This document shows positions 1,814 to 29,669 of a stretch of DNA of 39,997 nucleotides, in pieces. Position numbers and translations under genes: made by a program. The first letter of the stretch is position 1. Every line of letters starts with the position of its first letter. Location: positions 36,690,891-36,730,887 of the forward strand of contig NC_069002.1 of assembly GCF_001194135.2 (NCBI RefSeq). Direction: 5' to 3'. The DNA is from Octopus bimaculoides (lineage: Eukaryota). Below the pieces are notes generated by a model, which saw only the letters and a program-made list of their open reading frames with translations, had not been told where the DNA came from and did no database searches.

Positions 1814-1922
1814 CTTGCGGTGTGGCTGTGGACAAGCTGCGACAGCTCTGTGTGTACATTGTTACTGAGCTCATGTGGAAGTCCAGGCACTCTTGACGAC
1901 ATCGGTTGAATGTTTCCACTAA
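1814..1922 (-). CDS. INPP4: INPP4 exon 12: LVETFNRCRQECLDFHMSSVTMYTQSCRSLSTATPQ(G)
   Basis: ttttcctttttgtcag acceptor, AAG|gtgaat donor, phase 0 to 1. Aligns without gaps to recalled INPP4A [30 protein letters not shown] (L1, R9, Y23, L30). Confidence 0.8.
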
Positions 1923-2743: not shown

Positions 2744-5700
2744 TTTATCAACATCATTAAATTGAGTTTTATGCATCTTTTATATATTGGGTTGGCAACT
2801 AAGTTCCCACGATTTTTTTAAATTTTGGAATCTGTCTTTTTCGAGAATTCTATTTTTGAACCATTTTGGAATCTATTTTGTTTTTTTTCTAGTTAATTTT
2901 AGTTAATTTTTGTTTATTTTCAGATCATTAAAATGGAATGTCAAGTTAAGAAAAACAAGCATTTTCGACACCTCCTTCTTTTTGCTTTTAATCAAGGTTC
3001 TAAGGCTGCAAAAGCTGCTCGCGACATTTGTGCTGTGTATGGAGAGGGTGCCATAGCTGAAAGAACCGCTTGTGATTGGTATGCCAAGTTCAAAAATGGA
3101 AATTTTGACCTCAAAGACGCACCTTGTTCTGGCCGTCCAGTTGAGTTCGATGAAGAGCGATTAAACCAACTTTTGCATGAAAATTCTCNNNNNNNNNNNN
3201 NNNNNNNNNNNNNNNNNNNNNNNNNNNNNNNNNNNNNNNNNNNNNNNNNNNNNNNNNNNNNNNNNNNNNNNNNNNNNNNNNNNNNNNNNNNNNNNNNNNN
3301 NNNNNNNNNNNNNNNNNNNNNNNNNNNNNNNNNNNNNNNNNNNNNNNNNNNNNNNNNNNNNNNNNNNNNNNNNNNNNNNNNNNNNNNNNNNNNNNNNNNN
3401 NNNNNNNNNNNNNNNNNNNNNNNNNNNNNNNNNNNNNNNNNNNNNNNNNNNNNNNNNNNNNNNNNNNNNNNNNNNNNNNNNNNNNNNNNNNNNNNNNNNN
3501 NNNNNNNNNNNNNNNNNNNNNNNNNNNNNNNNNNNNNNNNNNNNNNNNNNNNNNNNNNNNNNNNNNNNNNNNNNNNNNNNNNNNNNNNNNNNNNNNNNNN
3601 NNNNNNNNNNNNNNNNNNNNNNNNNNNNNNNNNNNNNNNNNNNNNNNNNNNNNNNNNNNNNNNNNNNNNNNNNNNNNNNNNNNNNNNNNNNNNNNNNNNN
3701 NNNNNNNNNNNNNNNNNNNNNNNNNNNNNNNNNNNNNNNNNNNNNNNNNNNNNNAGCAGCATGGAATTCTTCTGCTGCACGACAACGCCCGCCCTCATAT
3801 CGCCAATATGACCAAGGAAGCCATTCAAATGCATGGCTGGGAAGTGCTGCCACACCCGCCGTACTCTCCTGATTTGACACCAACAAATTTCCACCTCTTT
3901 CGATCTCATTGGAATGCTATGCACGGAGTTTCCTTCAATACTGATGCAGATTTGAGAGCTTGGTTGGATAAAATTTTTCAAGTGGAAATCGGGTGATTTC
4001 TACCAACGAGGTATTGAAAATCTTGTTGAACGTTGGGAAGAAGTTGTAAACAACAAGGGTGAATACATTATTGATTAATTAGTTGTAATTTTTTTATTAA
4101 ACTTTTTTAAAAAATATAAATTTTAAAAAAACGGCAGGAACTTAGTTGCCAACACCATACATCTTATAAAAAAGAATTAGTAATAGCAGAAGTTGGTATC
4201 ATCATCATCATCATTATCAGCAACACCAATATCACTAAATGTTTCTCCACCACCACAACAGTTCATAATATTATGTCAGACAATATAAAGTAATTAACAA
4301 CAACAGAGATCATCATCATCGTCATCATCACGTCTCCCTTCATCAAATTATGTTCTAGAATTGTTTCTCTAGACCAATGTTTCTCAACTACTTTTTACCT
4401 CTGAACCTCTTTGATTGTTACTTTACTTGATGGACCCACACAGCCATTCAATGTTTAAAAAATCATATTATATTTTTAGAATTAAATCTTATTCGGAATT
4501 GTATTTAAAAAATAGTTAAAATATTTTGTGTATTGTAGGAGCGTAACCAATTTACTGCAGATAAATTTTAACAACAAAATCTTATATGGACTCTACAAAA
4601 GTCCTTGTAGACCCCAGTCACTGCTCCAGTATTCAACTGGTACCTATTTTATCAACCCCGAAAGGATGAAAGGCAAAATCGACTTCAGCAGAATTTCAAC
4701 TCAGAATATAAAAACAGACAAAATGGTGCTAAGCATTTTTCCCTGCGTGCTAACAATTCTGCCAGCTCACCACCTGATATCATTTTGTGGTATGAAGTAA
4801 TTGTCAAGTTATGTCCTTAACATGTAACCTTTTGTACAACAAAAGTGCTCCCTCCCTCCCTCNNNNNNNNNNNNNNNNNNNNNNNNNNNNNNNNNNNNNN
4901 NNNNNNNNNNNNNNNNNNNNNNNNNNNNNNNNNNNNNNNNNNNNNNNNNNNNNNNNNNNNNNNNNNNNNNNNNNNNNNNNNNNNNNNNNNNNNNNNNNNN
5001 NNNNNNNNNNNNNNNNNNNNNNNNNNNNNNNNNNNNNNNNNNNNNNNNNNNNNNNNNNNNNNNNNNNNNNNNNNNNNNNNNNNNNNNNNNNNNNNNNNNN
5101 NNNAAAGAACAAGTGAGATACACAATACAGCAATCTCAATCCAAATTCTATTATTGTTGTTATTAAAAAATTCTTTTATATTATTACATTTTATACTTAT
5201 CATTTGTTGTCTAACAATACATGTCAGAGATTGATTGAGCAAGCGCACAATCAAATGCTGACTCATTATGTGTTGCCATGAAGCAAATGAGTCCAAGTCA
5301 AGGGTGAAAAGGATAGTTCAATCATTAAAGACATCATCATCAACATCAACAACGACATTTAAGATCCATTTTCCATGCTGGCAAGTGTTGGACAGCTGAA
5401 CAAGAACTGGCAAAGCCAGGAGCCACAACAGATTCCATAGTCTGTTTTGGCTTCGTTTCTACAGCTGGATGCCCTTCCTAATGCCAAGAAGGAAGAAACA
5501 TTTAATAAAAATTTCATAACTTATCTTGTTAAATAAATATACACGGAAAACACCACGACTACAAAATGAAAATTAGAAAAATAAAAACAACCACTGCTGG
5601 AAACTGGAAAAGAAAAGATATTTGGCAAATATCAATAAACAAAATTTACAAATGTCAAAGAGAGGTAATAAAAAAAAATTGATGATAATAGTACATGATG

Positions 5701-9358: not shown

Positions 9359-9662
9359 NNNNNNNNNNACACACACACATACACACACACACACACACGT
9401 GAATGTGCATGGCTTAACAGTTAGGTAGTTGAGCTTATGATCACAAACTCGTGGTTTCGTTTCCCCCGACGGACAGCGCATTGCATTCTGGACACAAAAC
9501 ACTTCACTTCATATTGTTCCAGTCCACTTAACTCTAAATGGGTGACTGTGACAGCATGGCATTGTGTTCAGGGAAAATGTCAGCCAGTGGATAGAATCAT
9601 TTAAAAGCTACAATATATACATACACATACATGTTTATATATATACATACATACATACATAC

Positions 9663-9695
<33 letters not shown>

Positions 9696-11089
9696 CATAT
9701 ATATACATATATATATATATATAGACATATATATATATATNNNNNNNNNNATATATATAGACATATATATATATAGACATATATATATATATAGACATAT
9801 ATATATATATACAACCATATACATACACACACACATGCACACATACACACACTCATACAGATAATTTAAATATCCCAAAGTAGCACTTTACATGCAAAGT
9901 CTAAGAGACAAGTCGTGTTATAAGCCTACAATTTCAAGCATGCATGCAGGCATAAACCAGGATACAAACAAAAACAAGAAAAACAAGAAAACACAAATGT
10001 CTCAAAAAAAAAAACAAATTCTGGACAATTTCCAAAACACTTCTATATATATCTATATATACTGATTAACATTCAAGCCATTTCAATACATAATATTTAC
10101 CAGCATTCAAAATTTATGGCCTGAAAGTCTTGAAATAGATTCCTAATATTTGAACGAACTTCTTTCTTTTAAAATCTGGAGGTTTATATTGCTGCCCTTT
10201 TACTAACCGTTCATTAACACATTTTTTATCTTTTCAGTTTTACTTTTGGGTAGACAAAGTCTGTAAATTCATAATTTTGCATGCACCAGTTCTCTTTTAA
10301 CTATATATTTATAGATATATTTAATTGTTTTGTTTGTGCACATGCGTGCGTGTGTGCTTGCACGTTATATATGTATGTATGTATGTATGTGTGCATGTGT
10401 GTGTCTGTGTGTATCTCGTTGTTTTAATGTCCACTTTTCCATGTTTGCATGGATCAGATGGAAACCATCGAGGCAGAGTTTCTCTGGCCAGATGTCTTTC
10501 CTGTCAACACCCCTCATTTGTTTCAAACACGGTAATATTTCCTCATGAACAGGACATGTTATTATGGAAGATAAAACAAGGCATATATACATATAAGAGG
10601 CATGCTTCTTAGCCATATGGCCTTAACCCACTGTGCAGAACCTTGGGCAACTGTCTTCTCCTAAAGCCCCACAGGGCAACCAAAGCCTTGTCAGTGGATT
10701 TGATAGTTAGAAACTGAAGGAAACCCATTGTGTGCATGTATGTGTGTGTATGTATATATACACACACGCACATGTAATATATAGGTGTGTGTGTGTATGT
10801 ACTGTTGTGTAGACATCATGTGATGGCTGTAAATGAGCATCACTGTTATATATGTGAGGTTGTTCGTTTCCAATCTTCAGTGGAAAACGTTTGGCTATGG
10901 GGAAATATTACTTTGCTTGGAGACAGGTGAGTGTTGACAATAGGAAGGGCATCTGCCTCAACAAATTTCACCTGACCCATGAAAAGTGGATGTGATGATG
11001 ATGATGATGATTAAAGAGAGAGTTGTGTGTGTGTGTGTGTGTGTATGATACATGGGGAAACGCTGAAAAATAAGAAAAATGATATATTT

Positions 11090-11141
<52 letters not shown>

Positions 11142-14100
11142 GAGCAAGATAATTAAAATCATAGCAAAATCAATAGAATGCAGCAAGCAGCAAGATACCC
11201 TCAGCTTTCTATCTTTCTCTCTGATCCCACTGACTCTATTTCTCTCCTTTCTCTCACCTTATACTTACTCTGTGGCATGCACAAAGTACCATGATGACAA
11301 GGTTAAAGTGTTATGAACAAGCCGCAAGCTGCAAAAAGAACAGAGCATTGAGAAGGCCAGGTTGCGGCCCTTCGTAAATTGGTCCACCTGCAGTTACTTC
11401 CCCTGGTATGGCCCGGCACACCAGTTGGTCGACAGCTTCGGTGTAAAGGCCGGTCGAAATGGCTATGGCCAAGATCCAGGCTTGCTGTTGGCTTTCTAGA
11501 GTAATGGGCAGCTGAAAAATGACAACAGGCTTTTTATATCTGCTGAAGATTGACCACATTAGGAGGAGGTAATCAAGATTAATATGGGAAAAAATCAACA
11601 TCTAAACCTGGGGGAAGATTCATACACATTTACTAACATGAACGCACACACATAACTTTAACTCGCATAGACACACACATACAGACATGCCAAAACACAC
11701 AGGTACCCTTATACACACACTCGTGCAAACAAAAGAAATACATTTGCATGCACAAGCAGACGTCTACACACATAACATAACCTACAGATGTTAAGTACAC
11801 CACTACGTAGTCACTTGATCTGCTAGAAATAGCAGCTAAATGTCCTAACCTCACACTAACGTCTTAAGAAAAAGAAAAGACAACAGACAATATAATCGTA
11901 GGTATACAAAAGACAGGACGATCACGTATGGAACACCTTTCATCACAGGTCTGTTCAATCAACATTGACCTCTGTCTAACGAATAATCACTGACGTGTGT
12001 TCCACAGACGTTGTTTAATCTGCGGTCAGGCTTGATTGAGCAAAGAAAGCTACGATCAAATGAGTTCCATTTGTCGTCGTCCTGTCTTTTACTCAATGCA
12101 TTAGGACTATAAGTATCCAACATGTCCTTCTTTTGAAATACTCAGGATATGATCTGAAGGGGGTTTGCTTGATATTTTTAGCAAGTTGAGTGATCCTGTC
12201 GAGGTTCTCTCATTATTTCATGGTGGCTTTAGTTGTTGTTGTTGTTTCATTAATATTATTGCTGTTTAACCCAAGGTCAGACCTGGTCAGACTTATGATC
12301 AAAGTTGCTCCTCCTATTGGGATTCGAGCAGACCCAGGGCATGACAACCTCATGCCACCAGGAAAATGAACATATGATGATGATTAAATCCAGATATGAC
12401 CACCCAGTTCTATTTCTATGTACACTTTCTTTCTCAAAGATATTTAGAAAATGATCTGCAAGGGACTTGGCTGATATTTCTAGCTGGTTGAGTGACTGCA
12501 TTGAGGCTCCCTTGTTGGCAACATTCCACAAACAGTCGTCCAGACACTCATACATGTATGTACACACACACACACACACACACTGTAAACCACCATCCTA
12601 TGTAACACTGCCACTCATTTATGTAACGCTACACTAACAAATGGCAGAAAATGATATACTTAAACAAAAAAAAAAAGCAACAACTTCAAGAAAGCAAACC
12701 AAAAGTTTTAACAGATAAATCACATGCAAACTGGTTGTGAGACTGCATTGCATGTTGTGAGATTGTAGGGAGTTGTGGGAATAGATGAAAGTTGTAGCAT
12801 TATGTAGAGGTTGTGGTCATATAGGGAGGCTGAAAGACATTGGAAACTTTCTTGGCATATCAGGATGATCACAATGGAATAACAACAAGCTTTGCAGAAC
12901 ACAGTGGATAATGTAGTCCTAGATACATTGTGTCTGAATCATAGGTCTATACCATTAAGCTAAGAAAAATAAACAGAGAAATAAACTTGTGAAAAAGAAG
13001 AAACCAAAAGTGGTAGCCTCGAAACATCCAACCGTTAATGTCTAGACTTTGTTGCTGTTAGTTATGAAGTACTGTCATCACAGTGAATGGCAATTGTTAA
13101 TTCTGTTAGCAAACTGGTGGTTATGTGGTTATACACTTAATACTTTAATCTTTTAGCATTTAAAGTGGACACATGTCCAGCCCAAATTTTCTACCTGTTT
13201 TATGCTCAAACTGGCCAGATTTGGCCTCTTACATGTAGCTAACAATATACAATCACATCAAAATTTCAAAGCTATGAGATAATGGACAATTAATTCAAAA
13301 CAATGTGAATAACTAAGCATTACATTTGGCAGAATAATCTGAATGCTAAAAGGCTAAAAGTGATTGTTTAACTTGAAAGATTATAGTTTGAAATTTACTT
13401 TACTTATCTGTGCTAACAACTAAAAAACTCTTCACTGTACCTTCTTTATAATGAAAGTTCATACGTGAAAATGGAGACATATTGCCGAGAGTGGAAAATT
13501 TAAACTTAGAATTATGGAACTTGCTGAAAGAAAAAATCAAATTGTGCATCTCTTGGAAATTTGGTGTTTCTATGAAGAAAGGCCAACTGCAGAAAATGTG
13601 AAGCAGTAAATAATCTCTAAAGAGAAAGCAAACACATTATCCAGAACTAGAAAAAGAAGGAGATGAATGGGTGGAAGATGAGAGGAAAAATAAATGGTAA
13701 GAACAGTGTGTGTAAAATTACAAACAGAGAAAATGTCACAGGTTGAAATATATGTAGTCAGGCAATCTTTCAGATTTTCAAATGGATGGTGCCAGAGACT
13801 CTTCAAGAATCTTTCTTTAGAAAACAAAAATTTCACAGAAACTGAATAAAACTAGAAATATGAATAAGACACGTGTGTTTTTGAGACATTGGATACAATA
13901 AAAAGTAAAACTGAATTTATCAGAAGAAAAGCCTATGAAAAAATATTTTACTGCACTTTGTGTTGTTTAGCTGATGAAAGCAAACTAAATCTGATTATTT
14001 TAAAAAGAAAAAATATTCCAATTATCCACTGCCATTCTAAACTTTGGATGGATGGATGGAAGAGGAAAATGTATGTGTATGGTTCAGAAAGTACAGAATA

Positions 14101-17100
14101 ATTCAGAGCATTTTCAAGGCCACACCTGTAATGTTGGTGTAGGACGAAATTAGAGCTCACCCTACAGAGCCAGTGAATCACATGTCGAAAGATAAGGAAA
14201 GCATCAAGCTGTTTTATGATGTTTGGTAAACGTACTTCAGTCCCCTGATGTTGCATTGAACAAACTATTTAAGGACGAAGTTAGGAAGCATTGCATATCC
14301 TGGATATCTGATGAAGTGGGGAAAAACCAAAAGGAACAAGAGGTAACTTTAAGGATGCTAATACCACCAGGGTTAATGTAGCTTAGGCTGGTTTACTGGA
14401 ACATAATTTACAAGAGCTTTTTAAAGACTGGCATCAGTAATAGATTGTGGAATGATCAGGGTGGAACTAACTACAGACAATGCTGTAACTTTAGATAAAG
14501 AAAATAATGAAATGATAGGATAGGGTAAATCCAAAAGAATGGTTGGAGTTATTTGGATAACCAATGATGGGTCAGATTTTTTATGGTCTTGAAGTGATAA
14601 ACATACTTTATGACTAATGATAGCTTTTAATCAATAGTTGCTGGCCAAAAACAGGAACCATGCCAACTTTAGTGTTTTGAAGTTTGTCGTGATATTACAT
14701 TGGTTTCTTAACTCCAGCTGAACTAGAGGGTTGCATTATATACGAGGATAAAATATATTACTGACTGTCAGCTACAAAAGAGTCAAATTATATTCAAGAT
14801 TGCATTACACTCACGTAATTGCATAAACCAACATCAATAATAATTGGTCACTGCCTACTTGCCCTTATGGCCCAGCCGTCCAACAACAAATAACCGACAC
14901 ACAGACTTGTTTCTACTATGATCATAGCTGATAAAAGTTATCAAAATGGACATACTTCCCAATAACAAAAGAACCAAAAAGATTTGTGAAGACGGAGAAA
15001 TATTCTTTCAGAGAACTTACCTCACCAAGGTCTTGGAGCATATTAATTCTCTCCCGTTCTTCTTCAATGAAGAGCTTCCTAAAAGAAAAGCATGTAAAAT
15101 AGGAATAGGTTTTCAGTTCTCTGAGAAGTAACTCACATCAGTAATTTAGATAAAGAGTGAAAATCTACGAGAATGGAGTAAGCAGAGTAGGAGGATACAC
15201 ATGGATGGAAAAGGTTACTGAAGAGGTCACAGATATGTTACAAAAGATTTCCAGACAATGGACATAAGATAAAATAGGAACAATAATAAACAAGTGAAGA
15301 ACGAATATATAGTGTGTGTGTGTGTGTGTGTTTATTTGGCAAAAAAGAAAAAATTTACCATCAAACAATTTCCACCAATTTCACTGACAAGTTTTAGATT
15401 GATTCAAGATTATAATAAACAACAACACTTGTTCAAAGTACGGCACAAATGGATTGGACAAGAAACCTCAAGACAGCAAAGCAAACCTCATACTAGCAGA
15501 TCCCTTTAACATTCAGATTATCCTCTCAAATGTAATCCTTATTTATTCACATTGTTTTGAATTAATCATGGGATTATCTTGTAGCTTTCAGATTTCGATG
15601 ATGCAATTGTTTATTTTTAGAATGACATTGTAGAGCATGTGTAAGAGGCTGGATTTGGTCAGTTTAAATATAAAACAGGCAGAATATTTAGGTTTGATAT
15701 GACTAGTTTAAACGCTAAAGAGTTAAAGATCCAGCCCTTGTCATACAATCATGCTGATTCTGCTGAAGAACTTTATCAACCATCCACATAACTGTGGAAT
15801 ATTCAGCCACTTACACACCAATTACACAAGCAGATAATTCAGCTGATTAAACAACTGAATATCCATCAACAAAAGAGACAGAAATCTATTTACTCCTTAT
15901 TTATTATCATAAGTGATACTTACAGCAGCTGGAGTGGGAGTGTGTAGTTCCACTTAAACTCTGCCATCACTTCTTGGACAAACAACTGCATTCTTGCTTT
16001 GTTCGTGTCAAACCGAAATGTCTTCTTGATCGGGTTAGAGAACATGATTTTCAAGTTACCCAAACCCCGATTCTGCAATTTTTCTCCATAACTAACAGAA
16101 CCCTAGAAAGAAACAGAAAATTCATGAGAGTCACAAATAAGACTTCAGAATGAGTGAGGAGTGGAGTATGGTAATGGTAATGTTGATGGTGGTAGTAGTG
16201 GTGATGCTGATGATGGTGGTAGTGGTGGTGTTAATGATACCTACAGAAGAGAGTACTATTGTTTGTACCAGTCGCCTTCCTGGCACTTGTGCCGGTGGCA
16301 TGTGTAAAGACATTCGAGCGAGATCGTGCCAGTGCCCCTGGACTGGCTCTTGTGCAGGTGGCACGTAAAATACACCATTTCGAGGATGGCCGTTGCCAGT
16401 ACCGCCTGACTGGCCTTCGTGCTTGTGGCACGTAAAAGCACCCACTACACTCTCAGAGTGGTTGGCGTTAGGAAGGGCATCCAGCTGTAGAAACTCTGCC
16501 CTTTTGAAGATGATGTTATTAGTGATAATAACAGGTATTTGTAGTGACGATGTTGTCACTGTTGTCTATCCCTAATCAAGCAGACTATGATCAAGGTATT
16601 CCAGCCAGGACCATCCTGTCCTTTTAGGATATTGAAGAGTATATTATGCAGAGAATCTTTCCTCTTTATCAAGAGTGTATGGTTTGAGGAATATTTGGCA
16701 GCTATTTCTAGCAGGACAAGCAACTGCACAGAGGCTTCTTTGACTAGTGGTAACAACAGTGATGTTGCCAAGGAGAATAATGCTAATGTTGGTGGTAAAA
16801 GTGGAGATGATGGCAGCCATCATCCTCATCATCACCATTTAATGTCCGCTTTCCATGCTGGCATGGGTTGGACGGTTTGACTGGAACTGGTAAACCAGAG
16901 GGCTGCACCAGGCTCCAATCTGATTTGGCATGGTTTCTATGGCTGGATGCCCTTCCTAATGCCAACCACTCCAAGGGTGTAATGGGTGCTTTTTACATGC
17001 CACCAGCACAAGTGTCAATTATGTGATGCCAGCATCGGCCACAGGTACAATTTCACTTGGCAGTGAAGTAAGCATAAAGTTTGTGGTAGTGTTATGGGGA

Positions 17101-20100
17101 ATATGATGTAGTGGTGGCGGTGGTGGTGATGATGATGATGATGATAGTGATAATGTTGGTGGTGGGGTTAGTAGTGTGGTGAAGATAATGTCAGTAGTTA
17201 TGGTAGAGACAATGATGATGATGATGATGACAGTGGTAGTGACAGGTAAGAAGTCTGCTTCCCAAATACATGGTCCTGGGCCGTAGAATATCTACTTCAC
17301 TAAATTCCATCTGACCCATGCTGGATGTTTAAAAATGATGAAGATTATAATTCTGGTGGTGGTGGTGGTGGTGGTGGTGGCGGCAACTTAATTCACTGTC
17401 CTTTATTTTACTAAAACTTTTACCTTCCAACTACACCACATACGCCACAGATTTGGATATGGGTAAAGAGGTTGAGAAACCCATTTCAATTCCATCAGTA
17501 ATAATTGTTTCTAACGTGGGCACATTACCATCATCATCATCATCATCATTTAACATCCATTTTCCATGCTGGCATGGGTTGGATGGTTTGACAGGAGCTG
17601 GCAGGGCCAGAAGCCGCACCAGGTCCCATTGTCTGTTTTGGCATGGTTTCTACAGCTGGATGCCCTTCCTAGTGCAAACCCCTTTGCAGAGTGTACTGGG
17701 TAGATTTTACATGGCACCAGCACCCATACGAATGCTTTTTAGTGGTACCTTGGCTTTAGGATCTCAATTCTGTTGTTTCAGGGAAGGGTTTAGTGAATTA
17801 ACTCAAACGCAGTACTTGCTTCATACTTAGGAATGAGAAAATACAGTGCTAAAAGGATGAAAGACAGAGCTGACCTTCGTAGGACTTGAACTCAGAAATT
17901 AAAGAGCCGTAACAAATGCTAGAATGCATTTTGTCCAATGCTCTAACAATTCTACCAGTAAAACTCTATCAGTAAAATACTAATTCACATCAGCAATTTA
18001 GAAGAAGTATTTTTCTGATGACAGCTTTGCTACAGCATGGCCATAACCAACCAACTGGATGAAATCAGACAAAGAAAAAAATGAGCAAAAAGAAAGCATA
18101 ATTACCCTGGAATTATCTTCAATGAGAATGGATTCATCGTGGACCCAAGCAGTAATTTGTATTTGACCAGCAGCAGAAGAATCAGGAGACCTACAAAACA
18201 CATGTTTGGACACAGATAAATATTATAGCCGCGAAACAACAGGCAAACCTCTATGTAGTCACTGAACATGCTGGAAATTGCAGTCAAGTTTACCTAAAAT
18301 CACATTCTACCATCTTCAAAATTATTACATCTAAAACTACACTGGGTGCTGTAACTTTAGCTATAGGATATATATTGGCAGCGTTCTGAGTGTTTATTGA
18401 GCGAAAACACCTAAAAGCCCCACGAGGCTCCGGCAAGGGATGGTGACAAACCCTGCTGTACTCTGCCACCACAACTTTCTCTCACTCTTTCTTCCTGTTT
18501 CTGCGCTAGAGCAAAGTAGTAATGAAAAGAGCCCGTAGGTGAAAAATGGTTAACAACCTAGGGCTGTAGACAGACTGACAGAAATCTTTTGAAACAGTCA
18601 ATTCTATCAACCCCACTACTTGATTGGTACTTATTTTATTGACTCCGGAAGGATAAAAAGGTAAAGTTGACCTTGAAGGAATTGAACTCAGAATGTAAAG
18701 AGCCAAAATGATTGCAAGATTAGATCAATTTAGCCAGTTCTTCTAACATGGGCACAAAGACAAATTTGTTGAAAAGGGAAGGGTTACATGTGATATAGTT
18801 CCCCTTAAAAGGATAGAAAAGCTTATTGGAGTGTTTGAGTAGAAACAGAGAGACAGAAACTTACATTAATGGTAAATGTAATTTTTTATCAGGTTTCGCC
18901 AGAAGTGACTTCAGATCAAACATCACATAACCCAACTGTGACATCTGAAATAGATTAAAGGATTAAGAGATTAATGAATTAAAAGTTCAAGAATACAAGT
19001 TAAATGTCTAAATGTTGGAGATGAATTATTTTTTTTTTTTTTGTAATAAAATTTTGTAATAAAATTTCAGAATTTTAACTTCAGATTTAGAGATGGAATA
19101 TCATTGTTTTAATACCTGCTTTTTCAATGCTTGCATGGGTTACCCAAGACTTGTCAGGATACTATTCTAAAGTCAGACACCGTTCCTAATACCAATTCTT
19201 TATTTTTCAAATAAGGTACTTTATTCTCCACACATCAAACTGCTGTGGGACATTCTGCTACAAAAGTAGTGTTGATGCAAAGACACAAAGTCTATCTTCA
19301 TGTTTCTCTGGTAGCCCCAGTTGAGGAGAATAGGCAAAAATAATAGTTGCAGCTCCATTTTGTAAAACTGGTCTGAGCATAAGTATCCTATATGCTGTTA
19401 GGTTTTATCTCACAGTACGGTACTTTGGGAAAGTGCCTTATAGCATAGTCTTGAAACAACTACAGTCTTCAGTGGAATTTGGTAGGCAGAAACTGTGTGG
19501 AAAGTTGTCACTGCTCTTGGGTAGCAGACTTAAATTCACTGCCTAAATTATCAACACCACCACCCAGCCCCTGGGTAGCTTTAGCAGAAACGAAAAAAAC
19601 TAATAAAGACAGAGAAGAGAAGGTAAAGGTGAACGTAAGAAAGAGAGAAAAAGGAGACAAAAAAAACAGAAATAGAAAAAGGAGTAAAAACATAAAGGAG
19701 AGAAAGAGAGGGAGAAGGAGAGTAAGAAATGCTGACTCACGGTATTGGTCATCCTTTCGTTGACATGATAAACAGTAAACTTTACTCGTGTTTTCAGTTT
19801 GATGTTCATCCCAAAACCAATGGTCTTCAGAAACTGTGGATCATTGCTTCTCTAGAAAAAAGGAGAGGAATAGAAAATGGCACAAAGTAAATCAAGAGCC
19901 AAAAATCACTCCAAAACACCACAAAGTATACAAACAATACAAACAGAGAGGAATGGAAACTGTTGGTCTCTGATCAACTTCAAGCTTCTTGACTCCATTG
20001 AGGGAACGCTTCCAGTGTCACCTCCCTCCACTCCCACTTTCATAACCTTCAGAGCAGTGGTTCTCAACTGGGGTCCTTACAAAGACTTTTGGGGATCCAC

Positions 20101-22572: not shown

Positions 22573-25500
22573 GAGATGACAAAAAGTCACTGACTTCTGA
22601 CTGGTCTGAGGTCAGTATAGTGTTATGACATTACAACAAAAATTAATGAGTTAATAGTTTAGCATAAAACATGCATATTAGAAGTCTAACATCTGAAAAA
22701 GACATATCATGACTAATTCTAATGAAATATAATGCCTGTGTGCTTCAATTTTCTGAAAATAATTAAGAATTCAGGAAGATTTAATAAATAGCACATTTTT
22801 TTTTCACAGGTGTTTGGCGTGTAACTTAACGCCATAACATTCAAATGAAATGCTTATCTATTCAAATTGTTTTAAATTGATCATGCATTATCTTGTAGTT
22901 TTAAGATTGTGGTGATGTGATTCTTTATTTTTAGGATGACATTGTAGGGTAGGTGTGAGAGGTCAGATCCAGCCAGATTGGACATGAAACCGGTAGAATA
23001 TTTAGGCCGGATAAAGCCAGTTTGAATGCTGAAAGGTCAAAAGGTGCTTACATAAAATTATGATGGAAGCATTTCTAATCCTGAACACTTTAAAAGAGAA
23101 CAGTTTTGTATCATAGAACAAGAAGTGGCCAAAGCAAGTTGGTATCGAAAGATTAACCGTTAGCTTACAGCTTATCACATCAAGCAGTTATCTCATAGCA
23201 AAGATTAACCTTTCAGCAGTCAGATTGTTCTGTCAAATGTAATCCTTATTCATTTACATTGCTTTGAATTAATCATCATTAACTTATAGCCTCAAGATCT
23301 CAATGCTGTGATTGTTTATTTTTCGAATACCTTTGTAGGGTTGGTGTAAGAAACCAGATTTAGACAATTTGAACAAAAAGTAGAATATGGGGTCCAGATA
23401 TGGGTTAAGGGTTAGTCTGTGTAAGTGACATATCACATAGCAAGGGTTAAGGGTTAGTCTGTAGCTCATTACAAGTGGCATACTACATTTTAGATAGATT
23501 AAAGGTTTAGTTACATAAATGACAGAACTATCACATAAAACTGATTTCTTTATTTCCTACACAACAAATAACATTCCCTGTAACAACAATATCAAACATT
23601 AGCTTCTCCTCTCCACCACCACCACCTGCCAGGGGTCTTTGTTTCCTTTATTTAAAAAGGGAGTCACAACTATGTGCCCTGGGACCGTTCAGTAGAGTGT
23701 ACAGTGAATGTAGCGCAAGTTATAATATGGTAACTTGGAACCTATGCAAACTGTAGTGTAGTAACAGTTATTGATGATGTTGATGTTTAATCTGAGATCA
23801 AATCTAATGGAGAAGAATTGTAACCAAAGGCACTCCAACAGTGAACCTCCCACCTCTTTTAAAGCTATCTAGGGCTAAATTATCTGGGTTTTCCTTTTTT
23901 TTTCTTGTTTTAAGGTGGTGGAGTGTTGAGAGATTCATTTTCATTTTTTTATTTTTTTATTTTATCTAGTTTCAGCTCATGAACTGTGGCCATGCTGGGG
24001 CACCGCCATTAATAATACACTTAATTTATCGACCCTGAAAGCGAAGTCGACCTCGGCAGAATTTGAACTCAGAACGTAAAGACAGACGAAATGCCGCTAA
24101 GCATCTTGCCCGGCGGGCTAATGTTCCTGCCGCTTCATCTTCTATCATTTACTTGTTTCATTAAACTACAACCACCTTGAAAAATATTTAGTTGAATGTA
24201 TTGATCCCCAACACTTATTTTGTTTTTAAAGCCTGATACTAATTCCATCAGTCTCTTTTGCTGAACCACTAAGTTATGGGGACATAAACACACCAACACC
24301 AGTTGTCAAAGTGGTGGGAACAAGCACATACACAAAGACACACACCCACCCATACATGTATATATAACGGGCTTCTTTCAGTTTCCGTCTACCAAATCCA
24401 CTCACAAGCTTTGATTGGCCCAAGGCTATAGTAGAAGACGCTTCCCCAAGGTAACATGCAGTGGGACTGAACTCAGTACTATGTGGCTGGGAAGCATGCC
24501 TGCACTTGTATTCGTACCACACAGCCACACCTGCAGCTATATTTGGCTGCTATTTTTAGTAAAGTGAACAACCATATAGAGGTATCATTGCTTGCTAGAG
24601 TTATAGTGGGGGGGGGGGTATATGTATGTATGCATGCATGTGTGTACATATGCGCCACAACACTACAGCTCACTCCAGTAAGCTGTACAGTGTGCGAGTG
24701 AGCTGTAGTGCCGTAGCACAAATGGTGAAAGGTTGTTGAATGGTGAAAGATTGGAGAATGGCCATGTTGTAAAAGATGTATAATGTAGCAGCCAGGACAT
24801 GTAAAGGGTGTAGTGTGACAGTATGAACATGTGGAGAGTGTTGTAGAATAGAGGTCAGCAGACAACTGCTTGGCGTTTAACAAGTGGTGAAAGTTGCAGT
24901 ATAGAGAGAGATTTTTGTTATCTGTAGAGTGCCATATGGTGGGAGCCAGGGTGCGGACTACACTGGACAGACAGATGGGGGGACACACACACACACAACC
25001 AAAACATTTTCGTATCCTGATATCTGTGGATTAGAGACTATTGTTACAGCTACAGTACATCTAGAAATAGAGATAAAAACAGTAGGACCCAACACCTCTT
25101 CTGAACAGAAGACAGGACAAGCTGATCATGCATGCATGCGCACACACACCATTTTACAGTTCCAGTATCATTTACAAGAGCCAACTATTCCACTTATTTA
25201 CAGCTAAGTGAACTGAGCCATTTATCACAGGTAGAGAACAAAGACAAATCATCTCAACCATCAACAAAAATGATATATAAAAGACAAGCTGATGAAGAAA
25301 AGTTTTGTATCGGTGCTTTAGGATCTGCAGAACCCTGAGGTTCACAATTAAAGTAGAGCAAGTCCAGGAATTGAGTTCAAAATCTGTTGAGGAGACAGAA
25401 TTTTCAAAAGCCTAGAATCTATGTAAAAAAAAAAATCATTTAAATATTAAAAAAAAAATGAGCTTTGACAGTGAAAAAGTTGGGAAGTACTGTTCTACAC

Positions 25501-28500
25501 AGTCTCTCAGCTTGCAAGAAATAATAGACAAACATCCCTCAAATCACACATTACTATCTAAAACACACAACTGCGATAAAATAAGTAACACCGATAGAAT
25601 AAGTACCAGGCTTACAAAGAATAAATCTTGGGGTCAATTTGTTCGAATAAAGGCAGTGCTCCAGCATGGCTGCAGTCACATGACTGAAACAAGTAAAACA
25701 ATAAAAAACTATGCCATTTTAATCCCAAGCAACGCCAGGTATCTCTGCTAGTAAATAATAATAATAATAATAATAATAATAATTGTTTCTAACATAGGCA
25801 AAAGGCCAGAATTTCTTTCAGGAGATGGTAAGTATCTTACTAATATCTTATCGACCCTGGAGGAATGAAAGGCAAAGTTGACCATGATAGGGTTTGAACT
25901 CAGAATATAAAGGAGCCAGAACAAATACCACACAGCATTTGTCTGATACTCCAACAATCCTGCTGACTCGTGGGGGGGGAGGGAGTGGAAGAGTCATTAG
26001 GGAGTCAAACAAAATGCTGTGCAGTTTTTAGTTGTGGTCATTTACATTCTAGTTCAAATCCCTCCAAAGTCAACTTTGTTTTCCATGCCCCTGAGGTGGA
26101 GTGGAGTGATAAAAAAGTACCAGTCGTATACTGGTATTAGTAAAAAAAAAACTATTTCCCTCCTACAAATTTTGAGGCCTATTTTATCAACTCCAGAAGG
26201 AAACAAAGTCTACCACAATGGGAAATGAATGCAGATCATTAATGAGTCATAACTAAATACCACAAGAATACCAATAAAATCATCAGCAATTAAAAACGAA
26301 AAGCACCCACTACACTCTCGGAGTGGTTGGCGTTAGGAAGGGCTTCCAGCTGTAGAAACTCTGCCAGATTAGATTGGAGCCTGGTGTAGTCATCTGGTTC
26401 ACCAGTCCTCAGTCAAATCACCCAACCCATGCTAGCATGGAAAGTGGACGTTAAACGATGATGATGAAACTAAAACTAGTGTGATTATTTTAAAATCTGC
26501 TAAAATTGCTGCTTTAACCCATTAAGGGTTGTGGCTTATTGACACAACATGCTTTCTTCCACAGAGGACGGGTGTGGTTTATCAACACACTGCTACATTT
26601 GCATTATAAAGTATTTGATTAATTATCATCTTGTATTTTTGTTTTTTTCTTTTCCTTTTTTTTGTGTCCCACACAAAAAGACTTGCTATTTATACCCAGC
26701 CTTAAAGGGTTAGGATATGACTTTATGAGACACTTTTAAGAAAACAAGAGATGGCCCAGAATGGATGAGGGGCTTGACTTAAAAAAGGAAAAAAACATTT
26801 TTATACGATAGCTTTGTCTTTAGAAATTTTGCTCTGCAATAAAAATATTGCGAATTTTCTTTTGAGAAAAAAAATACACAAATCACTATTTTCCAAAAAA
26901 ATATTCTCTTTTATTATTCCATATAAAAGTATAAAATATATAATAAAAATCTCTTATTTATCTCAAAGGGGTTAGATCTGTTTATCAGAAAAAGTATTTT
27001 GTTATTTGTTTTAAATAAAAAAATTGTTTCTAAATTCCTATAAAAAAAGGAAAAAAAAAAACTGATTTTACTCAGAGAATAAAAAAGTTGATCATCTTTT
27101 TTAAAAAAAAGTTGGTGAGATTTTTCTAACCTGCAAAAAGAAAAGATGTCTGTGTAAAAGTATTGAAATGAAAGAATTACTAAACTACCAGAACTATGGT
27201 GGGAAACTGGCATTTATGGAAGAAAATAACAGTAATAATAGTCAAGTTTCATTCAGATTAAGCTTTTCCAATCTATCAGCTGTACGTTTAGAGATGAAAA
27301 ATGTTTAAATATTTACATCTACTCAGTGTTTCAAACGGTTTGATCTCTGACCATAGTCATCATCAGGTGCCATATTCCTGGATGTGTACACTATCCTAAA
27401 CTGTTTTGAACTAAGGAACCATTATTTCTAAACTAACACTAACAATTATATTGGAGGGGATAAGTCAATTACATTGACCCCAGCAATCCCAGTTAGGTTG
27501 GCATGAAAACAGTTTAATAATGAAAGGACATATTAGGTAATGCAATCCAACAGAGGTCAAATAAGACAGGATGGTCACAGCTAGAATGTTTTTGGTCATA
27601 GATCTGTGATCTGTTCAATTAAGCTTGACCTGGGCTACACAATAACATATTGCACAATAACATCCACAATATACAAAAGGATGAGATTATCGTTTATTAC
27701 CCAGGAAGCTTACTAGAAATAGTTGTCAGTTGGTGTTGTGAAAGTGTAGTAACCAGGGTATAGGAATGGGGTGGAACCAGTTTAGGGAACTATTTTTTGT
27801 CTGTGTTAAGGATAGACAGTGCATATGTAAGAAATGCAATATTGCATGAGAGTAAAACATGATGCAGAAGATGTGCAATGACTGGAAAGAATTGCATGCA
27901 TGAGTGACAGAAAAAAATGAGCATTGGGCCATCGGGTGCAAGAGAGGGTGACAGTGATGGTACAGATATGTGATGTATATGAAGGATGAGAGTTAAATGA
28001 TGAAGTGCTAAGAAATCCAATTGAAAAGGGATGCTGAGGAAGGTTTAGAAAGAAACGGTAAATGCTGAAGTTGGGATACTGGATATTGCAAAGATGAGAA
28101 GGAACAATAACAAACAGCAAGATACTGTGTTGAGATGGACTCTTCAATCTATGGAGAAACAGGCGTAAAATGATGATGATGATGGCAATATCAATCAATG
28201 ATCAATCACAAAACTTTAGGTATTGAACTTTTGCTAATTTCAGTATCTCTATTTCTTTATGAGTAAATTTAGATCAGTGGTTGTCAACCAGATTCCATAA
28301 GGACCTTTGGGGTCCATATATAAAAGTTTGTTGTTAAAATTTGTGTGCAATAAATTGGTTTTATATACTCTCACAGTGCACAAAATATTTAAACAATTTT
28401 TTCACACAATTCCAAATAATGTGTCTCTTTCTGTCTGTGTTTTTGTCCCACCCTACCCACTGCTTGGCAACTAGTGTTTGTTTGTTTATGTTCCCATAAG

Positions 28501-29669
28501 TTAGCAATTTGGCAAAAGGAGACTAATAGAATAAGCACCAGGCTTAAAAACAAAAGTAATACTAGGGTTGATTCATTCAACTAAAAGTTCTTCAAGACAA
28601 TGCCCCAGCACGGCCACAGTCTAATGACTGAGACAGATAACAGAGAAAAGAAGGGTAAGCAACAGAAAAAAAACACCCACCCTGAATATTGTCTCAATAA
28701 GTCTCATCCAACCCAGGAGACCATAAAAAAAGGTAGAAGTAAAAACAATGATGCTCATGATGATGATGATGTGAATATCTCCCCTCGTCCCCAAAGGAGC
28801 AGCTAAGAAACTCACTGTTTCCTCTGGTTTTCTGGCTTAACTAAATGAGAGATACATCTCTCCAAAAGTGTACCTCTGATCAGTCTATCGCAGATAACTT
28901 TCCCAGATAATCTGCTATATATATAATCCCTGACAGTCAGCTGATCAGAAGCATTGCCGAATAAAGTGTTCTGCCTCAGAAACACACCAGAAAACTATTG
29001 TGAATTTGAAATATAAGTATGGGCAAGAAGGTTGGTTGTTGGACAATCCAATAAGTCAGATACTCAGCCAGGTCACTTCCACTGGAGTAGAATAGCTTAG
29101 GGTGGAGACAAAAGTAAAGGAGTTAGACATAAAATACAGTGGGGGGGGGGGTTACTGTGGTGGTCTTAGAGGAAGCTGTGTATACTGTGTTAGAAACAGA
29201 GAACGAAAGAGAGTTGCTGCTCAGGGAGAGATAATCGTTTCTAAACATATCAATTTTTTTATCTTCTGTGGAGAATTTTTTTTTTTTTTTTTTGCAAAGA
29301 ATGAAAAGGGCATACATCTTATTGCAGATAATTCTTTTATTATTATTTTTTTAATTATCATCGTAGTTTTTACTGTGTGTACCAAGTGCTTTTTCCTGAA
29401 ACTGCCACTGTTTTATTTTATATTAATAATCTAATTAAACATAAATGAAAGCAATTTGAAGTATAAAAGCAAACCCTAACAGCAAACGCAGACACACACA
29501 CACACTTATAACATAACACAACACACACACACACATATATATATATACACACACACGGCAGCCAGCAACATAGAAAGGTTAAAGACTTACCAATACATAT
29601 CTCAACACATGGTTCTTCACCAGAAAGATCTATAAAAATAAACAAAACATATCTATATATATAATATAA

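Follow-up and report, generated by a model that had tools for sequence, protein, structure and literature searches.

Does the unusually GC-rich island in the intron that follows exon 11 of the Octopus bimaculoides INPP4 (inositol polyphosphate 4-phosphatase) gene encode an exon and, if so, what would that exon contribute to the protein? The 5' half of this gene, comprising the PH domain, the C2 domain and the linker, lies on the minus strand of the stretch of DNA analyzed here (39,997 nucleotides (nt) of contig NC_069002.1, positions 36,690,891 to 36,730,887, hereafter the window), and the island spans window positions 11269-11511. An initial annotation had proposed an alternative exon in register with exon 12, to be used as a mutually exclusive partner, as a truncating or decay-inducing exon, or as an internal 60-nt exon. 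Our findings suggest, with a probability that we put at roughly 0.7, that the island contains exon 12a of an ancient tandem-duplicated, mutually exclusive INPP4 exon pair, whose alternative use would swap one helix of the enzyme.

The evidence that carries this reading comes from other molluscs. The sequence after exon 11 differs between bivalve INPP4 proteins: a Logan transcript product (P0001) reads LPSLLESFVAADINFRGATVSDYTDAINLLACHQG, and the Tegillarca granosa model KUTeg_024887 (P0002) reads ISSEIQSACQEAQDYCMTRETLYSQQIKHITSYKG. In four mollusc genomes, namely three bivalves (Tegillarca granosa, locus L001 of assembly GCA_029721355.1, and the contigs L003 and L004) and the land snail Candidula (L005), the exons are arranged in the order 11, a, b, followed by exon 13 where the locus reaches that far, and all eight a and b exons are 103 nt long, run from AG to GT and have phase 0 to 1. 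The Tegillarca a exon, located 0.5 kb past exon 11, is unannotated and its b exon is annotated; the Candidula gene model takes the a exon, and its b exon is unannotated.

Each open 35-codon window on both strands of the octopus sequence (12,543 windows) was scored without gaps against these exons. The candidate frame, starting exactly at 11511, ranked first of the 12,543 against two bivalve a exons, with scores of 35 and 30 (combined z = 6.3), the next unrelated window scoring 20. Exon 12 of the initial annotation was, for its part, the best window when the Tegillarca b exon served as query (31, with 17 for the runner-up) and came second with the Tegillarca a exon. In line with this, a hidden Markov model (HMM) of seven non-cephalopod a exons placed the candidate at the top of 1,232 open reading frame (ORF) segments (E = 0.0097; next, 1.5), with an alignment that begins at residue 1 of the candidate, encoded at 11511, and an HMM of four non-cephalopod b exons had exon 12 as its top match (E = 0.0016). 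The candidate has a mean score of 29.0 against a exons and of -5.8 against b exons, the corresponding values for exon 12 being 9.9 and 32.0. Judged by these sequence comparisons, the segment 11511-11388 is very probably orthologous to the a exon of other molluscs, and exon 12 to their b exon; we refer to them as 12a and 12b.

One could instead explain the island as a chance open frame within intronic sequence of high GC content, or as a piece of a mobile element, since short ORFs beside an AG are common (719 of the open 35-codon windows are preceded by one) and cephalopod introns are repeat-rich. This seems highly improbable to us: the top rank was reached with each of two independent exons from other species, the alignments begin precisely at the AG, the HMM points to the same ORF, and strand, intron and exon order are all as expected. 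As for a mobile element, blastn with a word size of 7 found no second copy of the candidate in the window (best other match, 17-30 nt), the initial annotation having matched it to none of the repeat families there, and the candidate has no match in Pfam (four reading frames, two strands), no tRNA and no Rfam family on either strand, the latter search returning only sub-threshold microRNA matches on the adjacent (TA)n. These matches (mir-297, mir-1277 and mir-3149, both strands) fall on a (TA)n microsatellite at 11100-11155 and represent a low-complexity artefact.

The composition of the island had been described as rich in both GC and CpG. The first holds, as 11269-11511 has 51% GC against 37% in the whole window (99.6th percentile of 243-nt windows), and exon 12a alone, at 56%, stands at the top of the nine exons measured (range for them, 0.33 to 0.50). 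CpG enrichment is only moderate, with eight CpG and an observed/expected ratio of 0.50 compared to 0.30 overall (85th percentile). The splice signals and reading frame proposed for the island were all recovered on the minus strand: the acceptor is gttgtcatttttcag, with its AG at 11513-11512; the frame opening at 11511 reads LPITLESQQQAWILAIAISTGLYTEAVDQLVCRAIPGEVTAG and stays open for 41 codons and then for 25 more; CAG|gtggac, after 11388, is the earliest phase-1 GT in this frame; and an internal AG (11330-11329), an in-frame TAA (11313-11311) and a donor-like AGA|gtaagt (after 11269) follow. The 60-nt exon postulated from the internal AG can be discarded: entered in phase 0, it runs into a stop once five codons have been read, and it has no homologue. 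By analogy with bivalves, the segment from 11387 to 11269 is possibly a regulatory flank, or else it might extend the exon into a longer, poison form.

With regard to exon 12b, its reality follows from Sepia-type transcripts, which read LVEVHNRCRQECLDFHMSSVSMYSQS… straight after …LQDLGE, the peptide that ends exon 11 ahead of the gtaagt following 15021. The gap-free alignment of 12a to 12b on which the initial annotation relied does exist, but with 7/35 identities and a BLOSUM62 sum of +6 it is weak and, taken alone, not above chance; the likeness to human INPP4A, also invoked, is by itself at chance level. A tblastn search of the window with a human INPP4A sequence located the C2 exons and exon 11 and recovered neither 12a nor 12b; this region is too divergent for vertebrate queries. 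Exons 12a and 12b each align gap-free to the single exon of other phyla, with L1 and Y23 invariant in both. The homology between them is inferred through the family and not from their direct match, and what decides the assignment of 12a is its likeness to exons elsewhere among molluscs, not the one to exon 12. Exon 11 (to 15021), 12a (11511-11388) and 12b (1922-1814) are neighbours, with no constitutive exon between 12a and 12b, and no other INPP4-like open window was found between the three, assembly gaps aside. The gaps (runs of N at 521-1491, 2691-2700, 3189-3754, 4863-5103, 9359-9368 and 9741-9750) lie in the intron between 12a and 12b and downstream of 12b, and constitute a small blind spot where more exon copies might hide.

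Single exons of other phyla give b-like scores. In Tubulanus, the one nemertean outgroup, a single b-like exon lies between exon 11 and exon 13, and the flanking introns yielded no further homologous open window. The duplication therefore reaches back at least to the ancestor that bivalves, gastropods and cephalopods have in common. It appears to predate the split of these three classes, with 12b retaining the ancestral-like sequence and 12a representing the divergent copy.

The candidate is identical to a bivalve a exon at 12 of 35 positions, and two bivalve a exons are identical to each other at 13 of 35; therefore, 12a bears no sign of decay. This equivalence argues for continued purifying selection on 12a, and it bears on the idea that 12a is a relic, that is, a true a orthologue that is (almost) never spliced in cephalopods, which would use only 12b, and that is heading to decay. 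Neutral sequence would not retain such similarity after more than 400-500 million years, nor would a decaying exon be expected to keep a frame of 41 plus 25 open codons, an AG at the exact homologous position and a phase-1 GT.

Several observations nonetheless weigh against our interpretation, and some of them are what a relic would predict. Within the Sepia-type 90% cluster, each model or transcript that was read across the region carries 12b, and no cephalopod transcript with 12a was found; however, Sepia belongs to a different cephalopod lineage (about 85% protein identity), and assemblers favour the major isoform. Exon 12a is lengthened to 124 nt, compared to 103 nt in other molluscs, and its sole phase-1 donor, gtggac, is weak. 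The candidate peptide was not found in the protein collections searched: a query with the 66-aa ORF returned nothing, and the 96-aa and 82-aa ORFs had no exact match. The 66-aa search is leaky, and its negative result carries little weight because an exon 11+12 control was missed too, although Sepia-type proteins with those words exist. Beyond the cephalopods, the a-type gene models of other molluscs are predictions, and the only direct a-type transcript retains the next intron. Finally, exon 13 lies outside the window, so that the junction between 12a and exon 13 cannot be reconstructed from it. Weighing both sides, we consider it unlikely that 12a is a relic.

In a separate observation on the searches, the word-indexed protein search missed the Sepia-type INPP4 cluster represented by P0008 despite long exact shared words, and an exhaustive search of representatives found it; negatives from the indexed search therefore call for caution.

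The usage of the two exon types in other molluscs agrees with a mutually exclusive pair. A bivalve transcript (L002; Logan, SRR6473829) joins exon 11 straight to the a exon, and full-length a-type models from Potamilus (P0005) and Bradybaena (P0154), together with a partial model from Candidula (P0007), continue from the a exon in frame into exon 13. The b type is used in Tegillarca (P0002) and in every member of the Sepia cluster that was read across the region. Each type occurs alone: a in P0001, P0005, P0007 and P0154, and b in P0002 and the P0008 cluster. Hence, the mutually exclusive outcome of the initial annotation, in which a donor at 11388 would give an exon with the same 0-to-1 phase as exon 12, is sustained by pairs in four mollusc genomes with each type used by itself. 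Its further suggestion, that the switch governs production of a catalytically competent phosphatase, is not borne out as the main role; the full-length Potamilus and Bradybaena proteins keep the C-terminal catalytic motif CKSAKDR.

A related possibility is that the main role of the island is to poison or truncate the message: with the weak donor unused, translation would run to the TAA at 11313-11311, or splicing would proceed from the donor after 11269, giving a target of nonsense-mediated mRNA decay (NMD) or a protein reduced to PH and C2 domains, and lowering the dose of phosphatase. The bivalve transcript L002 (positions 1449-1781) offers one hint of this, having lost all upstream introns and retained the intron past the a exon, in which a stop follows 25 codons on; the intron could be a detained one, the product a PH-C2 isoform cut short, or the RNA an unfinished pre-mRNA. 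The donors of the a exons are, moreover, the weakest of exons 11, a and b in all five mollusc species compared (gtctta, gtctcc, gtctcc, gttgaa and gtggac), with 4-5 of nine matches to the donor consensus, against 5-6 for b exons and 6-8 for exon 11, and the octopus window holds a strong donor-like GTAAGT after the in-frame stop. In the intron downstream of the bivalve a exon, the first ~50 nt (L003 10257-10306, L004 10209-10258, L002 1449-1498) are as conserved as the exon itself, with 72-84% identity versus 30-50% for the other intron flanks compared. On the opposite side, P0005, P0154 and the partial Candidula model run in frame into exon 13, the two full-length ones reaching the catalytic motif, an exon that merely carries a stop would not need a helix-forming peptide with invariant L1 and Y23, and a single Logan contig may well be unfinished pre-mRNA. 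A predominantly poisoning or truncating role therefore strikes us as quite unlikely, although it can coexist with mutually exclusive use of 12a and 12b.

The conserved bivalve flank has the invariant core AAGCATGGCnGATCACGTAGTTAT and contains GCATG; it may act as a splicing enhancer (GCAUG) or encode a conserved read-through peptide (GLPHxxKHGRSRSY). In the octopus, TGCATG is present at 11281-11276 on the minus strand, 108 nt past the 12a donor, and again at approximately 1723-1728, 86 nt past the 12b donor. GCATG also occurs downstream of the a exon in L003, L004, L002 and Candidula, and not in Tegillarca; these counts are suggestive and not significant, given a background of 0.25-0.54 per 300 nt. 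We also considered an RNA structure hiding the 12a donor and rejected it, as the predicted fold of 11530-11300 is not more stable than that of shuffled sequences (z = +0.54). A more ambitious and tentative proposal, which we regard as possible but not probable, is that a regulated INPP4 switch has been maintained in conchiferans for more than 450 million years, in which 12a would be tissue-specific (for example in neurons or muscle) through its weak donor and a GCAUG (Rbfox-type) enhancer, the unspliced by-product would be a PH-C2-only protein, and cephalopods would possess an unannotated isoform of this phosphatidylinositol-3,4-bisphosphate (PI(3,4)P2) phosphatase.

The reading frame gives further shape to the pair. 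Exons 12a (124 nt) and 12b (109 nt) are both of length 3n+1 and both of phase 0 to 1; therefore, productive mRNAs should carry exactly one of them. In Tegillarca and Candidula, 11+a+13 and 11+b+13 are open, inclusion of both exons leads to a stop inside b and skipping of both shifts the frame; in the octopus window, a+b shifts the frame likewise. Such a combination of frame and NMD is a usual route to mutual exclusivity.

As to the protein, no solved structure covering the alternative-exon region was found. When the a-type protein of Potamilus, P0005, is modelled with AlphaFold (predicted template modelling score, 0.73), the a exon corresponds to residues 398-432 and forms a helix at 400-428 (per-residue confidence, pLDDT, 87-95) directly after the exon-11 helix at 369-393. 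Exon positions 1 (L398) and 23 (Y420) are at least 90% conserved among 24 INPP4 proteins, and both are kept in the candidate; the codons by which the cephalopod exons are longer encode predicted coil beyond the helix.

These findings allow us to propose a model of the locus. Two tandem-duplicated, homologous exons, 12a and 12b, would sit between exons 11 and 13, each encoding the second long helix after the C2 domain, immediately behind the exon-11 helix. L1 and Y23, among the few positions common to all INPP4 proteins, would be held constant in both, most other residues being unlike between 12a and 12b. As only mRNAs with one of the two stay in frame, the pair would behave as mutually exclusive exons, and both isoforms would be full-length phosphatases differing in one helix of about 35-41 residues. 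The 12b form is presumably the default, 12a would be spliced in this cephalopod as well, and the choice between them may be regulated through the weak 12a donor and elements of the downstream intron, possibly of the GCAUG/Rbfox type. Based on the structural model, the switch would exchange one helix surface in the stretch that links the C2 domain to the catalytic part, and would not turn catalysis on or off.

The identity of the host gene and the coordinates and phases of the exon 11/12 junction, as given in the initial annotation, proved correct. A spliced query assembled from the window exons retrieved mollusc INPP4 proteins, and these exons are collinear with P0008, a full-length Sepia-type Logan transcript product, with about 85% identity over aligned residues (261 identities in 379 columns, of which 71 are gap columns corresponding to exons omitted from the query). 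They were also aligned with the Tegillarca protein named phosphatidylinositol-3,4-bisphosphate 4-phosphatase, and exon 11 can be aligned to P0008 and to exon 11 of Tegillarca, L003, L004, Candidula and Tubulanus. Pfam detects the PH and C2 domains in P0008, whose CX5R phosphatase motif is CKSGKDR; the 3' half of the octopus gene lies beyond the window. The coordinates of the features are collected in Table 1.

Table 1. Positions of INPP4 features in the octopus window and of the alternative-exon region in four other mollusc loci.
Feature	Coordinates	Strand	Remarks
PH-domain segments, INPP4	34679-, 32137-32067, 30803-30600 (examples)	-	stop-free, splice signals flanking
C2-domain segments, INPP4	20594-20475, 19848-19738, 18935-18867	-	stop-free, splice signals flanking
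Further INPP4 exon	16100-15923	-	stop-free, splice signals flanking
INPP4 exon 11, constitutive, upstream	15021..15078	-	58 nt; …KLFIEEERERINMLQDLGE; phase-0 end; donor GAG|gtaagt
Polypyrimidine tract and acceptor of the a exon	11512..11533	-	aaagcctgttgtcatttttcag; AG exactly where the bivalve/snail a-exon homology starts
Candidate a-type exon 12a	11388..11511	-	124 nt, phase 0 to 1; LPITLESQQQAWILAIAISTGLYTEAVDQLVCRAIPGEVTA(G)
Weak donor of the a exon	11382..11387	-	CAG|gtggac; 5/9 matches to CAG|GTAAGT
Intron segment 3' of 12a	11269..11387	-	GC-rich for ~55 nt; TAA, AG, TGCATG, donor-like AGA|gtaagt
b-type exon 12b (exon 12 of the initial annotation)	1814..1922	-	109 nt, phase 0 to 1; LVETFNRCRQECLDFHMSSVTMYTQSCRSLSTATPQ(G); donor AAG|gtgaat
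Tegillarca L001, exons 11/a/b/13	28863-28919 / 29438-29540 / 33472-33574 / 35825-		
Bivalve L003, exons 11/a/b	4599-4655 / 10154-10256 / ~14960-15062		
Bivalve L004, exons 11/a/b	4364-4420 / 10106-10208 / 17917-18019		
Candidula L005, exons 11/a/b/13	23403-23459 / 24539-24641 / 27796-27898 / 29457-		

Two irregularities in existing models were observed along the way. In Tegillarca, KUTeg_024887 runs through the b-exon donor into the intron (…SYKG-DWETYF-stop; L001 33472-35910) and the next called gene starts at INPP4 exon 13, so that a single INPP4 is split into two models at the alternative-exon region. In Acanthosepion pharaonis, the 982-aa model P0155 is devoid of the N-terminal 26 residues of the 1051-aa transcript products P0008 and P0156 and of the internal segment …LDELR[ELHTAES…CRVA]MRGT… found in them; either mis-annotation or another alternative region may account for the missing segments.

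If 12a is an exon as proposed, it adds a coding exon to the cephalopod gene model and explains a conflict among mollusc INPP4 annotations, in which some models take a, others b, and the Tegillarca model breaks at this very place. It would also provide a dated tandem exon duplication in a lipid-signalling enzyme, present in bivalves, gastropods and one cephalopod and absent from a nemertean. Additionally, the two isoforms would amount to a natural experiment on the helix beside C2, with respect to membrane targeting, partner binding or autoregulation.

Compared with poison exons and detained introns, the INPP4 a exon is similar in the weakness of its donor, which an in-frame stop closely follows, in the conservation of the intron flank in bivalves and in the one transcript that retains the downstream intron. 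It differs in that the body of the exon is a conserved peptide that elsewhere continues in frame into exon 13, the stop being intronic.

With vertebrate INPP4A and INPP4B the mollusc proteins share the C2 domain, the exon-11 helix (…LEELGE), the next helix (P0037/P0038) and the C-terminal CX5R phosphatase domain, and residues L1 and Y23 of the alternative exon recur throughout the family. Unlike the vertebrate proteins, those of invertebrates have an extra N-terminal PH domain. In vertebrates, this region was diversified by duplication of the whole gene (A and B), exon duplication not having been found.

Mutually exclusive exons that arose by tandem duplication form a well-documented class (PMC9741552, PMC8373072, PMC9013439), with human tandem-duplicated exon substitutions having been catalogued (PMC9741552, PMC8373072) and further examples in exon 5a/5b of SCN-alpha (PMC12772994), the duplicated exon of oyster AOX (PMC5589949) and coq-2 of helminths and molluscs (PMC7434440). 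The main text of the human catalogue PMC9741552 makes no mention of INPP4, and a full-text literature search found no INPP4 mutually exclusive pair, returning only cancer splicing surveys. The INPP4 pair departs from the class in being found in molluscs only (the nemertean has one exon), in the 124 versus 109 nt of its octopus members, in that no competing RNA structure was found around the a exon, and in that its exclusivity is deduced here from frame and gene models. It resembles the class in its adjacent, probably homologous exons of equal phase and nearly equal length that encode one structural element, in its ancient origin and conservation across classes, with one copy often missed by annotation, and in the frame shift that penalizes double inclusion and double skipping. 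As we interpret it, INPP4 12a/12b is an additional case of this known class.

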